This document shows, piece by piece, positions 7,987 through 39,310 of a stretch of DNA of 46,558 nucleotides. This DNA is from Macrostomum lignano (taxonomy: Eukaryota). The position numbers and the translations under genes were made by a program. Location of the stretch: positions 1 to 46,558 of the forward strand of contig NIVC01004422.1 of assembly GCA_002269645.1 (NCBI GenBank). The letters are read 5' to 3'. Within the stretch, counting starts at the first letter, position 1. The number at the start of each line of letters is the position of its first letter. The notes beneath the pieces are model-generated. The model was given only the letters and a program-made list of their open reading frames with translations, was not told the DNA's origin and did no database searches.

Positions 7987-10900
7987 ATGTCTGCGAGCGT
8001 ATCTCAAATTTCTGTGGTCTTTCGTCTGCTTGGAGTTTTTGTCTTGATTGTAAGATTTCATCTTGATAAAATATTTGTTTCGAATAGCTTTTTTCTGCGA
8101 AATTCGAATTGATTTCCAGAGAGTAAAGTTAAGACTACGAGTAGCAATTTTCTCTTCTCTCCTCTCTCCCCTCTTTTCTCTCTCTTCTCTCCCCTCCACT
8201 CTCCCCTCTTCTTTCGCCTCTCTCCACTCTCCTCTCCCCTTCTCCCCTTTTCCCCTTTCGCGAAAAGGGAAATCCGGGGTCCATGAGCATTGCCCGCCTA
8301 GCTTTTCCCGCCGAGGTTTGCCCGCAATGCTTTTTTCCTGCAGCGCGTTTAGCCACGCGGCAGATTCTGTCTGCTGCATCGCCCCCTAGTGCTTACTTAG
8401 TAAGTCTTAATAAAGAGATTACCCGATCAAAACGTCTTGATAGTAACTTACTAACGTACCAAATGCTTATTTTTCTTGTAGCTTTTAATTTCTATATGCA
8501 TGTAGATGGCGCATCGGTGAGCTATTAACTCATGCATACGCCATGTCGCTTTGTCCTCAAAATCTGTTTATTAAGACTTACCGAGCATTAAGAGGCGATG
8601 CAGACAGAATCTGCCACGGGGCTAAATGCGCTGCAGGAAAAAAAGCATTGCGGGCAATTCTCGTACTACCCGGCGGAGGAAAGTTTCGGCAAAACTTCAG
8701 TTTCAATCTCTGAAGTGTGCTCTTTCTAGACAGTTTTGATGGGATTTTACTCGACCTAATTTGTCCATGGCGAAACTGCAAATCTTTGAAAAAATCCGTT
8801 TGGAAAACAGAACTGTATTTCGAGTGCTGCCGCTATCCAAAAGTACTTTTCATTTTTTCTCCACCGATGGGAGATTACTTAATATGTATTCCAATTCATA
8901 CTGTTCCGCACTCAAACATGTACCCGCGAAATTTTCTCCAACCCAGCTGGTGGTGGCGCTGGTGTTTCACCTTGTTCCGTCATCGCCGAGTGCCGACAGC
9001 TTCACGGAGACCGGCGACCCACACCCGCTGGCCCCCATTGAAGGCGGCACGACGGCCCACTTCGAGATTCCTCACATTCTGCATCACACCTTCGCCTCCG
9101 AGATGGTCTACGAGAACTACCGGCCAATGATCAGCAGCTGTCTGAAGCTCAACCCCAACTGGACTTACTACCTGTGGCGGGACTCCGATGCCAGGACCCT
9201 CATCTCTTTGCACTATCCGCAGTACATGAAGACATACATGCGCTTCAATGACAACCTGCAGCGCTCCGACGCCATTCGATACATCATCCTGCACCGGTTC
9301 GGAGGTGCAATAATTACTAACAACACATTCGATAGCTTTTAAATAAAATTAGGATTGTTTAAAAAGCTCCTGCAGAGCAACTCTGGGGTTGAGTAGCGAA
9401 GTGTTGACCTGCCCGAAACTCGTGCCAAATGATCTGGGTTCGAGTTCAGGGGTGACCATATGATTTAGAGGCCATGGTGCTTGTACACCCTGTGTGAGCG
9501 TGTTAAAGTGTGACCCGTGCTCGGATGCATACTCAGGGGTTAGCGGATTTGCCATTGTCAGTGATTTGCAGCAGTGCCTGCGACCTCCGCCATGCCAGAT
9601 CAGAGGCAAGTTTTTCATTCCCGTAGGGGGCCCGCCGAAGTGCAACTCCTCGTACCGACCCCAACCGCAGGCATCTACCTTGACATGGATGTCGAGTGCG
9701 TGCGGCCGTTCCACCCGGCCCTCACTCGCCAGGCAGCCTTCCTCGACCAGGAGCGGGTGGAGCAGACGCGGATCGCATGGGGACGCCAGTTCAGCGCGAT
9801 GAACTCGCTCATGGGCTCGGTGCCCGGGCACAAATTCTTCCAAGCAATGTCCGATCGCGTGCTGCTCAGGAAGCTGCCCGGCGATGCGTACTCGTCTACC
9901 GGGCCGAACGTGCTCACCCAGGTGTTCCAGCGGTTCCGCAACAGCCCGGCGATCCGGAACTGGCCGGTGCACCTGCTGCCGCCGAGCGTTGCCTCACCAC
10001 TGATGGACCCGAACAGGAACTGGAGGCAGCTCTGTCGCTATGCTCGTGAGTAGCAGGCCTGCTGTTGTGCAGGTGTTGTGCCTGCATAATTTTTCCATTT
10101 TCCTATATACTAAAAATGGTCTGTCTGTGTCTATGTGATCGATTAGAGAAAAAATGGCTGGACCGATTTTGTTCGAACTTGCACTGTTCGATCAGAAATT
10201 TTCCCGTGACTGTACATGCATCGTGGCTAAGAAATTGCTCGATGCTAAAGGCATTAAATATTCGAAAAACATGCTTTTTTGCAAAGGTCAAGCAAACTTT
10301 TCGACTTGAAATGCATTGTAAGAATGCTAGAGAAAAAACTGACTGGTTGAATTCTGACTCTGAAATAGATTGCATCATAACTGAATTGTAACTCCGACTT
10401 GAATTGAAAATGCAGTGTGGAAGCGTAGCACCAGACTTGATTTAAATTGCGTAACCATATTGTTAACTGATACTGACTGACTGAGAAACTGATTATGTCA
10501 TAACTGCTTCGTGTGATTTACTCTATGCTTGGATTTTCAAGTGTTGAATTATATAAGTGCAAATTTTGATGTTATCAAAACGATGAGAGCTAGCCTAGAG
10601 GTAAACAGACTGAACTGCTAAATGCAGCGACGATGGTTCGAATTTTCATAGAGTATAATTTTTTTAATTAAAGCTTTTCAACGTCAGGAAAACTAAAAGA
10701 CTTTTTAAAAAGAAGCGTCATGTAAAAATCATAGAAGCGTCATTTACAAAATCATAGAAGCGTCATGTAAAAAAATCATAGAAGCGTCATTTAAAAAATC
10801 ATAGAAGCGTCATATAAAAATCATAGATGCGTCATTTAAAAAATCGTAGAAGCGTCATGTAAACAATCATAGAAGCGTCATGTGAAAAATCATAGAAGCG

Positions 10901-37099: not shown

Positions 37100-39310
37100 C
37101 AGCCTAGCATCCGATACCTGCTTTTCTTCACCCCTGAAACACCAAGTTTTTGTTTTTGGGTCATGTATAAGTCATTAGTATTGTTCGTGAGGTTCATATT
37201 CGAAAGTGAGCGCTAGTCAAGTACGTAGCAATTATAAGATAGCTTCACTTTCGTCAAGCCGTAGTTTTGTGTAATTTACATGTGGAGCTTTCTAAAAAGT
37301 ATTTATCGCTTCCAATTAATAATCTTCTGAAGGCCTCAGTGAAGTCAAATTTGCATGGGTTCACACATTTCAGCCGTTTAAACTTGATCCAACTCTTTAC
37401 TGTGTCGTACATGCAATTACCCAATTATACCTTTTAGCATTCTATTTGATTTTTCTTCATTCAAGTTGGTGCGCGGCCTGGCAGCTTAGCAGAGAGTTCC
37501 CACAGAAAAACCATAGAAAAGCAGACAACAAAGATCAAGAGTTGGAATGTGCCGAAATTAAAGAATAGAGCAGAGAGAACCTGAACAGTAAAATCAGTCT
37601 GGCGGACAGAGGGAGAACAGTATATATGAGCGGTGGTTTGGAGTTTAATGTCCGTGAAATAGGCCAGATTGATAGGGAAAAATATATTACCTGCTGAACC
37701 ACTTTTAAGTCCATTTTCCTAGAGGTTGTGAAGCAGGCGCTTTCAGATATATAATATTGCCAACCCTCGCCCGCAGGCATCTACCTGGACATGGATGTCG
37801 AATGTGTGAAGCCGTTCGGGCCGAACCTCACCCGGCAGGCGGCCTTCATCGACCAGGAGCGGCCGGAGCAGACCAGAATCCTGTGGGGCACCGAATACAG
37901 CGCCATGAACTCTCTGATGGGCTCGGTGCCCGGGCATCCCTTCTTCAAAGCCATGGTTCAAAAAGTTCTCTACAAACAGCTGTCCAAAATGGCGCTCACA
38001 TCAACAGGGCCGGTGATACTCACGCAGGTGTACAAGGACTACCAGGGCGACGAGTTCGCCAGCCGCTGGCCGGTGACGCTGCTGCAGCCCAGCGTGGCCT
38101 CCCCGCTGATAGACTGGCGGACCAACTGGACGCAGCTGTGCAGCAGCGCCAGTGAGTTGCCAGGCGTTCATGGCCTGACTGCAGAGAGCACCCAGGGCTC
38201 AGTTTTGACATGGGAAGCTTCCCGCTCGTTGGCTAGGAACTCAGGCAGTAAAAGACTGTAACGCATCACAGATGTGGCAATCAATCTGAATGCCCGAAAA
38301 TGTCGCTGCAAAATTTATTAGCAAGAAATTACTTCACTCCTGCTTCGCTGCTAAAATTGCAGAGCCGCCCGGAAGCAAAGGTCTGATTTGGTTCGATCAC
38401 GGCTGCCACCTGCTGAAGTGGAAAGACTGGAACATGGACGACTCGGACAACAGCACAGTGGCTGTGCACCGTTTCCTGCACCTGGGCTACCATTTTTTGA
38501 TGAAGAAGCGAAAGGCGCTGTTTAATGTCACAGAGGCCTTCAAGCCAAGAGTGAAGCTGTATAACTCTGAATTGCAATCTGACGAATGTTCGAGTAAAAA
38601 GTCAAATTGCAATTAAGTGACAAATAAGTACAAAAGTCTATTTTTGGTGCTCATGGAGTTTGAATGCGCGATCTGCACCCAGAAACAGTTTCTTGATTTC
38701 TTTAGGCTTGCAGAATAATTTTGTGAGTGTTGAATCATGTAGACAACTGAATTTGGCAGGTCTCATAACAGTCTTATGTCATGTTTTTTTACTTTGAATG
38801 TCGAGTGCTTTTTAGAATTAACAATGGAAACTTTGTTGAATAATCTGTATTTGTGTAGCTCACTATCGTTCACACTGCATTGGCTGAGTCCTGATTCTAC
38901 AGTAGCAAACAGCATATTGCTGCCAAAGTACGTTCGAAACAGGCTACTTTGGATAGCGCATTCAAGTAGTCGCGGTTATTCAAAGGAAATGTTTTCAGAA
39001 CAAAAGCTATAAATTTTGCAGAGAGTAAAACGTCTTTTGGTATTACAAGCCTGCATGGTAATGAGTTGATATGGTCCACAGATCGTAAATACATGTTGCA
39101 GTAAGCCTTCCGAGGCGTAATTTGCAACCACTCCAATGGACACACGAGTTAAGAAGGATTCTCGTGCCTCTTAAAGCACCGCCATTACACAATTGTGCCT
39201 TCAATTTTTTACAATTAGATGTTCTCTAGGGACAAACTCCGCCTCTACTTCGACACTCAATTCATGCGCGAGCCAAATCTTCATGATGGAGTTACGAGGG
39301 GTATTTGTGA

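Follow-up and report, generated by a model that had tools for sequence, protein, structure and literature searches.

The GT32 gene cluster

Here we describe a tandem cluster of glycosyltransferase family 32 (GT32) genes in the flatworm Macrostomum lignano. The cluster lies on contig NIVC01004422.1 of assembly GCA_002269645.1, of which positions 1 to 46,558 were analyzed as one stretch of DNA (hereafter the window). It consists of four paralogs in tandem, all on the forward strand; in the models that we rebuilt from the sequence (Table 1), every one has four exons separated by canonical GT..AG introns. Judged from these models, three of them (g1, g2, and g3) are intact genes, and the fourth (g4) is a copy disabled as a glycosyltransferase. 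We consider it likely that these four paralogs of a spiralian GT32 subfamily arose by tandem duplication in a Macrostomum-specific expansion of a family that was inherited vertically within Spiralia.

The four copies are built on one plan. Intron phases are 0/1/1 throughout; intron 1 (phase 0) interrupts the part that codes for the signal-anchor helix, and intron 2 falls within the second Gly codon of the sequence FGG/IYLDMD. The third exon has the same length in every copy, as it also has in the unlinked paralog Mlig014529 (375 nt), and encodes the DxD motif (D-M-D), the TGP motif, and the residues up to the first conserved Cys. The introns, on the other hand, can be very long: minisatellites fill the 11.5 kb of intron 3 of g1, and intron 2 of g3 contains a 13-nt × 195 tandem array. 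When the g2 protein was compared with the window by tblastn, exactly these exon sets were matched, with E values from 1e-15 to 1e-180, which puts the cluster far beyond chance; the same search, long introns and minus strand included, returned no further GT32 fragments. The paralogs are 62-80% identical over the catalytic domain, and the ratio of nonsynonymous to synonymous substitution rates (dN/dS) between cluster copies is 0.27-0.45, pointing to purifying selection.

Two trivial origins were considered and rejected. An assembly artefact is at odds with copies that are just 62-80% identical and with a gene order that is repeated in a second contig, NIVC01003158.1. Bacterial contamination does not agree with the introns in the genes, nor with flanks in which remnants of animal transposons and a ZIP transporter are found.

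An earlier reading of this DNA, made from the sequence alone (the sequence-only reading), had placed the cluster between 7987 and 38616, and these bounds are exact, being the ATG of g1 and the stop of g4. The shared architecture it had described (four exons, phases 0/1/1, a 375-nt exon 3, and the split at FGG/IYLDMD) is borne out by the rebuilt models. Its count of four genes stands in part: there are indeed four copies with the claimed layout, but just three are intact, g4 having an in-frame TGA.

Table 1. Features of the window, with the GT32 cluster first and its surroundings below
Feature	Positions	Strand	Size or product	Remarks
g1, GT32 gene	7987-8049, 8947-9304, 9671-10045, 21551-21753	+	332 aa	splice model
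g2, GT32 gene	24603-24671, 24947-25754, 25972-26346, 26490-26695	+	485 aa	splice model
g3, GT32 gene	28216-28308, 28409-29051, 31769-32143, 32416-32621	+	438 aa	splice model
g4, disabled copy	34575-34649, 35027-35354, 37777-38151, 38363-38616	+	343 codons	splice model
In-frame TGA in g4	35327-35329	+		replaces Arg of the D-A-I-R-Y motif
Exon 3	9671-10045 (g1), 25972-26346 (g2), 31769-32143 (g3), 37777-38151 (g4)	+	375 nt	
Exon 4, example (g2)	26490-26695	+		second conserved Cys (GC), GT32 C-terminal His motif (VVHRF), second conserved His (LHLGY); from alignments
Reverse-transcriptase ORF (open reading frame)	2947-4203	+		upstream of cluster; RVT_1 E 9e-21
DDE_3 (Tc1/mariner-type) transposase fragment	22061-22387	+		between g1 exon 4 and g2
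ZIP (SLC39-type) zinc transporter exon(s)	42755-43072, probably ~42400-43230	-		downstream; PF02535 E 3e-19, HELPHELG motif
Minisatellite arrays	10711-13138, 14937-19997, 20050-21009, 27187-27862, 29092-31622, 36438-36958, 39304-39600		23-mer × 106, 24-mer × ~210, 41-mer × ~16, 36-mer × 19, 13-mer × 195	first three in g1 intron 3; 27187-27862 in g2-g3 spacer; 29092-31622 in g3 intron 2; 36438-36958 in g4 intron 2

Protein architecture and fold

All four products match PF04488 with 55-63 bits, against a cut-off of 23 (gathering score), at E values of 1e-15 to 1e-17 (1.7e-16 for g1 and 4e-17 for g2). PF04572 (Gb3_synth) found no match in any of the four at E<=0.1, whereas human A4GALT, taken along as a positive control, reaches 160 bits. 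The family call and the motifs listed in the sequence-only reading are thus confirmed.

Each product has one hydrophobic segment only, located at the N-terminus (residues ~1-48). In the AlphaFold2 model of the g2-type protein a helix spans residues 6-43, and the per-residue confidence (predicted local distance difference test, pLDDT) is mostly >90 over residues 210-485. In g2 and g3 the anchor is followed by a long low-complexity stem, which in g2 is rich in Lys and Gln. The catalytic domain of ~270 aa carries the motifs IPxI(L)H, D..RY...GG.Y.D.D (in which the DxD is D-M-D), N..MG..PGHPF, and TGP. The region D..R..(L)..GG.Y with the DxD reads SDAIRY.ILHRFGGIYLDMD in g1-g3, and g4 has a stop in place of the Arg and YLL in place of HRF.

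The best Foldseek matches in the Protein Data Bank (PDB) are retaining GT-A enzymes, namely YeGT, Och1 (9n3s), SetA, PaTox, and glycogenin. By sequence, Och1 (9n3s) is the only significant PDB match (E 4.9e-8), over profile positions 59-156 (~100 residues). The intact products are type II membrane proteins of family GT32 with a GT-A fold.

These features suggest how the proteins might work. A short cytoplasmic tail leads into the signal-anchor helix, followed by the variable stem and a catalytic domain in the lumen. The protein would then be a putative retaining (alpha-linking) glycosyltransferase of the Golgi or secretory pathway. The DxD motif and the C-terminal His would bind the nucleotide sugar together with a divalent metal, after which a single sugar would be added to a glycoprotein or glycolipid glycan.

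The C-terminal module

The last exon encodes a module with two Cys and two His, all four of which are present in g1-g4. Across 29 sequences of the family, C432 and H453 never vary, and the conservation of C414 and H457 is at least 90% (numbering of P0021, the database entry of the g2 protein discussed below). In (V/A)VHRFLHLGY, it is the first His that corresponds in the alignment to the YAVHVW of A4GALT and the IHH..SW of bacterial GT32 proteins. Hence, exon 4 holds an element of the core catalytic domain and is not an add-on. The conserved C-terminal His of GT32 is, we presume, the third metal ligand. What is specific to the subfamily, on the alignment, is the Cys…Cys insert together with the second His, and these are found throughout the animal-type subfamily, also beyond Macrostomum. 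The view of the last exon as a family-specific extension, taken in the sequence-only reading, therefore holds for these two elements but has to be given up for the first His, which is common to A4GALT and bacterial GT32.

A disabled fourth copy

The stop in g4 is codon 126 of 343. At the corresponding position g1 and g3 have CGA and g2 has AGA, and the Arg of the DAIRY motif (R284) is invariant across the 29-sequence alignment. Right beside the stop, HRFGG has become YLLGG, so that further conserved positions are altered. The splice sites and the remaining frame are intact.

Both the TGA and the YLL recur in contig NIVC01003158.1 (GCA_002269645.1), which runs collinear to the window (97.5-99.8% identity) but has minisatellites of other lengths. 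Given these differing lengths, NIVC01003158.1 is an independent haplotype or assembly copy. At its g4 locus the RNA-seq-based annotation lists no gene. The closest paralog of g4 is the unlinked Mlig014529, and the dN/dS of this pair (0.53) lies above the values of the other pairs. Taking together the repeated TGA and YLL, the missing gene call, and the raised dN/dS, we read g4 as most likely a fairly recent pseudogene.

Alternatively, all four genes could be functional, with the TGA being a sequencing error, a rare allele, or a site of readthrough (e.g., by selenocysteine). The otherwise undamaged splice sites and 343-codon frame would fit such a view, as would a dN/dS that is raised but not 1. 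An identical TGA in a contig that differs elsewhere by 0.2-2.5% nevertheless argues against an error, the stop hits a family-invariant Arg with the conserved HRF beside it also changed, and no gene is listed at g4. We thus hold it to be very unlikely that g4 is functional, and treat it as a pseudogene below.

Annotation and transcripts

The best database matches of the cluster all come from M. lignano. The g2 model has a close counterpart in the databases, since P0021 (BOX15_Mlig028735g1, 485 aa) equals it except for 2 residues, the join of exons 1 and 2 included. The Mlig_3_7 annotation was built from RNA-seq transcript assemblies (PMC5730564); a g2 model with the same exon joins in an annotation of that derivation means that spliced g2 transcripts exist. 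A 434-aa gene with the start and stop of g3 is called in GCA_002269645.1, and g3 is thus probably transcribed too. The spliced transcripts that the sequence-only reading had proposed to look for can accordingly be pointed to for g2, and apparently for g3, as gene models in Mlig_3_7.

For g1, the join of exons 3 and 4 is identical to our splice model in P0001 (UniRef A0A1I8GB.., 416 aa), a fused WormBase-type model. This entry joins exons 2-4 of g1 to a mis-spliced part of g2, and the public annotation of the cluster is thus partly wrong. As hypothetical proteins, the cluster genes already figure in the annotation; the family is catalogued but uncharacterised.

Relatives, profile scores, and phylogeny

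An exhaustive HMMER search gave 16,760 matches at E<1e-3, 456 of them at <1e-30. Many of the top matches are further M. lignano paralogs, which fall into at least 11 clusters below 90% identity; the lineage expansion that had been proposed from the sequence is thereby supported. The named relatives outside Macrostomum are all spiralian: Lamellibrachia satsuma (KAI0237612.1), Paralvinella palmiformis (KAK2163354.1), Lineus longissimus with two genes (XP_064630918.1 and XP_064630304.1), and Lingula anatina (XP_023931183.1). The whole architecture, last exon included, is kept across the 29-sequence alignment.

To compare families on an equal footing, we used a profile hidden Markov model (HMM) of 343 positions, built only from the named animal members and leaving the window genes out. 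The products of g1-g4 match this animal HMM end to end (positions 14-339) with 366-376 bits. Fungal Sur1-like proteins reach 115-192 bits and match positions ~10-240 only; bacterial-type proteins reach 148-193 bits and do not extend beyond position ~253. A4GALT trails at 38-49 bits, over positions 125-257 only.

In a neighbor-joining tree (291 columns, 200 bootstraps), the A4GALT/A4GNT family was represented by four vertebrate A4GALT sequences. The tree splits A4GALT from all other sequences with 100% bootstrap. The four window copies and Mlig014529 are monophyletic (99%), and the fungal Sur1-like proteins form a clade of their own (92%). A divergent M. lignano paralog, Mlig006027, groups with the other spiralians.

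These results bear on the idea that the window proteins are divergent members of the A4GALT/A4GNT family, i.e., alpha-1,4-Gal or GlcNAc transferases. The idea has the UniRef names of some paralogs on its side ('Alpha-1,4-N-acetylglucosaminyltransferase' and 'Alpha 1,4-glycosyltransferase'), as well as the PF04488 domain, the GGIYLD.D motif, and the C-terminal His motif that are held in common with A4GALT. However, the window proteins are without the PF04572 match that A4GALT gives, the IPxIIHQTW-type N-terminal motif is not in A4GALT, and A4GALT has both a low, partial score on the animal HMM and a long, fully supported branch of its own. (The human A4GALT sequence was checked before use: besides its PF04572 score, it is one residue off P0223. 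Real vertebrate A4GALT sequences were used in the comparisons.) We regard membership in this family as refuted by PF04572, tree, and HMM scores, and it would be most surprising if it were correct after all. An alpha-1,4-Gal or GlcNAc transfer activity as such is biochemically possible. The sequence-only reading had placed the proteins outside A4GALT/A4GNT and nearer to fungal Sur1/Csh1-like and bacterial GT32 proteins, and the tree and the HMM scores agree with it on both counts.

Some of the matched proteins are unusually long. P0022, P0023, P0028, P0030, P0032, P0034, P0035, and others are 900-2500 aa long, with the GT32 domain making up a part of the chain, often as two matched stretches, and P0184 and P0196 combine PF04488 with PF01755 or PF05050. 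Such entries could result from the fusion of gene models, or they could be eukaryotic glycosyltransferases that truly have several domains.

Origin of the cluster

The distribution of introns gives a hint as to when the cluster took its present form. The four-exon layout of g1-g4 recurs in Mlig015448 (~36% identical) and Mlig014529, whereas the single intron of Mlig006027 lies at another site, and two proteins from outside Macrostomum, P0049 (annelid cluster) and P0059 (ENA contig), are encoded by single ORFs. The introns were thus gained within the Macrostomum-expanded clade and before the cluster. In the sequence of events that we propose, a spiralian family inherited vertically would have gained its three introns before the Macrostomum-specific expansion, local tandem duplication within that expansion would have produced the array, and g4 would have been lost later through an Arg-to-stop change in the motif for nucleotide-sugar binding.

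The sequence-only reading had instead suggested a horizontal acquisition, i.e., a transfer from fungi or bacteria into the Macrostomum or flatworm lineage with introns gained afterward. Fungal Sur1-like and bacterial GT32 proteins are indeed the most similar ones after those of animals, homologs of other animals can be intronless, and the introns are restricted to the Macrostomum-expanded clade. Intron-poor coding regions are, however, common among Golgi glycosyltransferase genes, so that intronless homologs are no evidence of transfer; intron gain fits the ordinary course of evolution for a Golgi transferase gene with few introns and gives no sign of a recent transfer. Moreover, annelids, a nemertean, and a brachiopod supply the closest named relatives, all with the full C-terminal Cys…Cys…His…His module that fungal and bacterial proteins lack, and M. 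lignano itself retains Mlig006027, which sides with the other spiralians. With spiralian nearest relatives and a common C-terminal module, a horizontal transfer into the Macrostomum lineage is not supported, and we judge it quite improbable. The reading had itself named broad vertical inheritance as what would remove the transfer idea, and, within Spiralia at least, such inheritance is found. Two publications fit in with it: 12 copies of the family are listed for Alvinella (PMC12403961), and a planarian 'sur1' homolog has been reported to be expressed in discrete cells (PMC4603911). It would still be conceivable that an early spiralian received the gene from a microbe in a far more ancient transfer.

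Several points nonetheless weigh against vertical descent within Spiralia of a family of working glycosyltransferases, which we prefer. The named taxa are Spiralia only, with about one-third of the clusters named and most close matches being metagenome or ENA proteins. The deep nodes of the tree, on which the order of animal, fungal, and bacterial groups depends, have less than 60% bootstrap. No gene is listed for g1 and g4 at the Mlig_3_7 locus. As to function, family membership and fold suggest retaining chemistry, dependence on a metal, and a location in the Golgi, and no biochemical characterisation of any member of the animal subfamily turned up in the literature that we looked at, just as the sequence-only reading had held for similar animal proteins. 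Literature searches on Macrostomum glycosyltransferases, on GT32 in metazoa, on the Mlig gene ids, and on inositol phosphoceramide mannosyltransferase yielded nothing on this GT32 family.

Surroundings and repeats

The neighborhood of the cluster is rich in repeats and mobile-element remnants (Table 1). Minisatellites take up the long introns and the spacers, and their lengths vary between assemblies; the 13-mer array, for one, measures 2.5 kb in the window versus ~0.6 kb in NIVC01003158.1, and several of the minisatellite arrays produce long spurious ORFs. In intron 3 of g1, the segments 10065-10391 and 14251-14599 form an apparent duplicate that flanks the 23-mer array, with the same peptide strings in their ORFs. 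Positions 1695-5567 of NIVC01003158.1 align to the window from 14236 onward. A compound microsatellite at 41557-42045, with a (THSL)n-like minus-strand ORF, adjoins the GC-rich ZIP region. Scans of the window with Rfam and for tRNAs gave no matches.

At another GT32 locus (L006), an inverted partial copy of exon 3 lies at 9078-9488 on the minus strand, upstream of Mlig015448g4 (10001-13664) and 97% identical over residues 180-316. This suggests a local rearrangement there.

Biological significance

The animal 'CSH1-related' GT32 proteins are multicopy in several spiralian phyla, and no member has a known donor, acceptor, or product. M. lignano offers transgenesis, RNA interference, and in situ methods, which makes a compact cluster of three intact paralogs practical for finding the product of the enzymes. 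A glycan of the surface, of mucus, or of an adhesive is a candidate for this product. The genes g1-g3 add to an animal GT32 subfamily that is known but uncharacterised, and for which automatic names such as 'alpha-1,4-N-acetylglucosaminyltransferase', 'MIPC synthase' (mannosyl-inositolphosphoceramide synthase), and 'OCH1-like' are likely wrong. The claim of horizontal transfer, which would be liable to draw attention, is removed, and what is left is an otherwise ordinary tandem expansion of a gene family, one copy of which is decaying, in a genome that is neopolyploid and rich in repeats.

A more ambitious view is possible but doubtful, namely that the subfamily, recognizable by its C-terminal Cys…Cys…His…His module, is a functionally new clade of animal glycosyltransferases that makes an alpha-linked glycan or glycolipid epitope undescribed in animals. 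Amplification has occurred repeatedly, with at least 11 clusters in M. lignano and 12 copies in Alvinella. These copies would perhaps serve secreted materials such as mucus, adhesive, or tube matrix, and the array would be one hot spot of amplification among others.

Comparison with known systems

We end by setting the window proteins beside the GT32 groups that they resemble. A4GALT and A4GNT share with them the CAZy family GT32, the GGIYLD.D motif, and a C-terminal xAVH.W His motif. A4GALT has the PF04572 Gb3_synth region, on the other hand, and is without the IPxIIHQ motif and the Cys insert of the window proteins.

Och1, the initiation-specific alpha-1,6-mannosyltransferase (9n3s), shares the GT-A fold and the DxD region (Foldseek E 3.5e-9), but identity in the structural alignment is 14-15% and the sequence match is confined to the residues around the DxD. 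Similarity over the full length was not found, the matched profile positions being those given above.

The fungal Sur1/Csh1 proteins belong to PF04488 and share the motifs IPKIIHQTY, QRADAIRYF.L..FGGIY.DLD, PGHPFF, and STGP with the window proteins. They close with 'GSSWH' and then a hydrophobic segment and have no Cys/His module, whereas in the window proteins it is the reverse.

One may therefore ask whether the window proteins are true Sur1/Csh1 orthologs, i.e., mannosyl-inositolphosphoceramide synthases that transfer mannose from GDP-mannose to inositolphosphoceramide. Database names of the relatives point that way, such as 'CSH1' for Lamellibrachia, 'inositol phosphoceramide mannosyltransferase 1-like' for Lingula, and the PANTHER label 'CSH1-related', and fungal Sur1-like proteins give a good alignment with the N-terminal two-thirds of the domain. 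These names of the MIPC type are automatic transfers, however, and the match of fungal members ends at about position 240 of the animal HMM, with a hydrophobic C-terminal segment where the window proteins carry the Cys/His module. To our knowledge, moreover, inositolphosphoceramide is not a recognised flatworm lipid. In a published tree of PF04488, animal genes do group with the MIPC synthases of yeast rather than with Och1/Hoc1 (PMC5225481). On balance, true orthology is unlikely, and we conclude from sequence and profile comparisons that the window proteins are in all likelihood not Sur1/Csh1 orthologs.

The closest counterparts of the window proteins are the spiralian CSH1-related GT32 proteins. 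The PANTHER label PTHR32385:SF20 ('MIPC synthase CSH1-related') that we apply to the window group is taken from the Alvinella genome paper (PMC12403961) and from the database names of the relatives. In the spiralian proteins, too, an anchor at the N-terminus precedes the motifs IPxIIHQ, D..RY..GG.Y.D.D, PGHPF, and TGP, and the C-terminal part holds the Cys…Cys…His…His module. They are multicopy as well, with 12 copies of PTHR32385:SF20 'CSH1-related' in Alvinella (PMC12403961). Their identity to g2 across the alignment is only 22-28%, and the three fixed introns set the Macrostomum-expanded clade apart from the single ORFs of P0049 and P0059.

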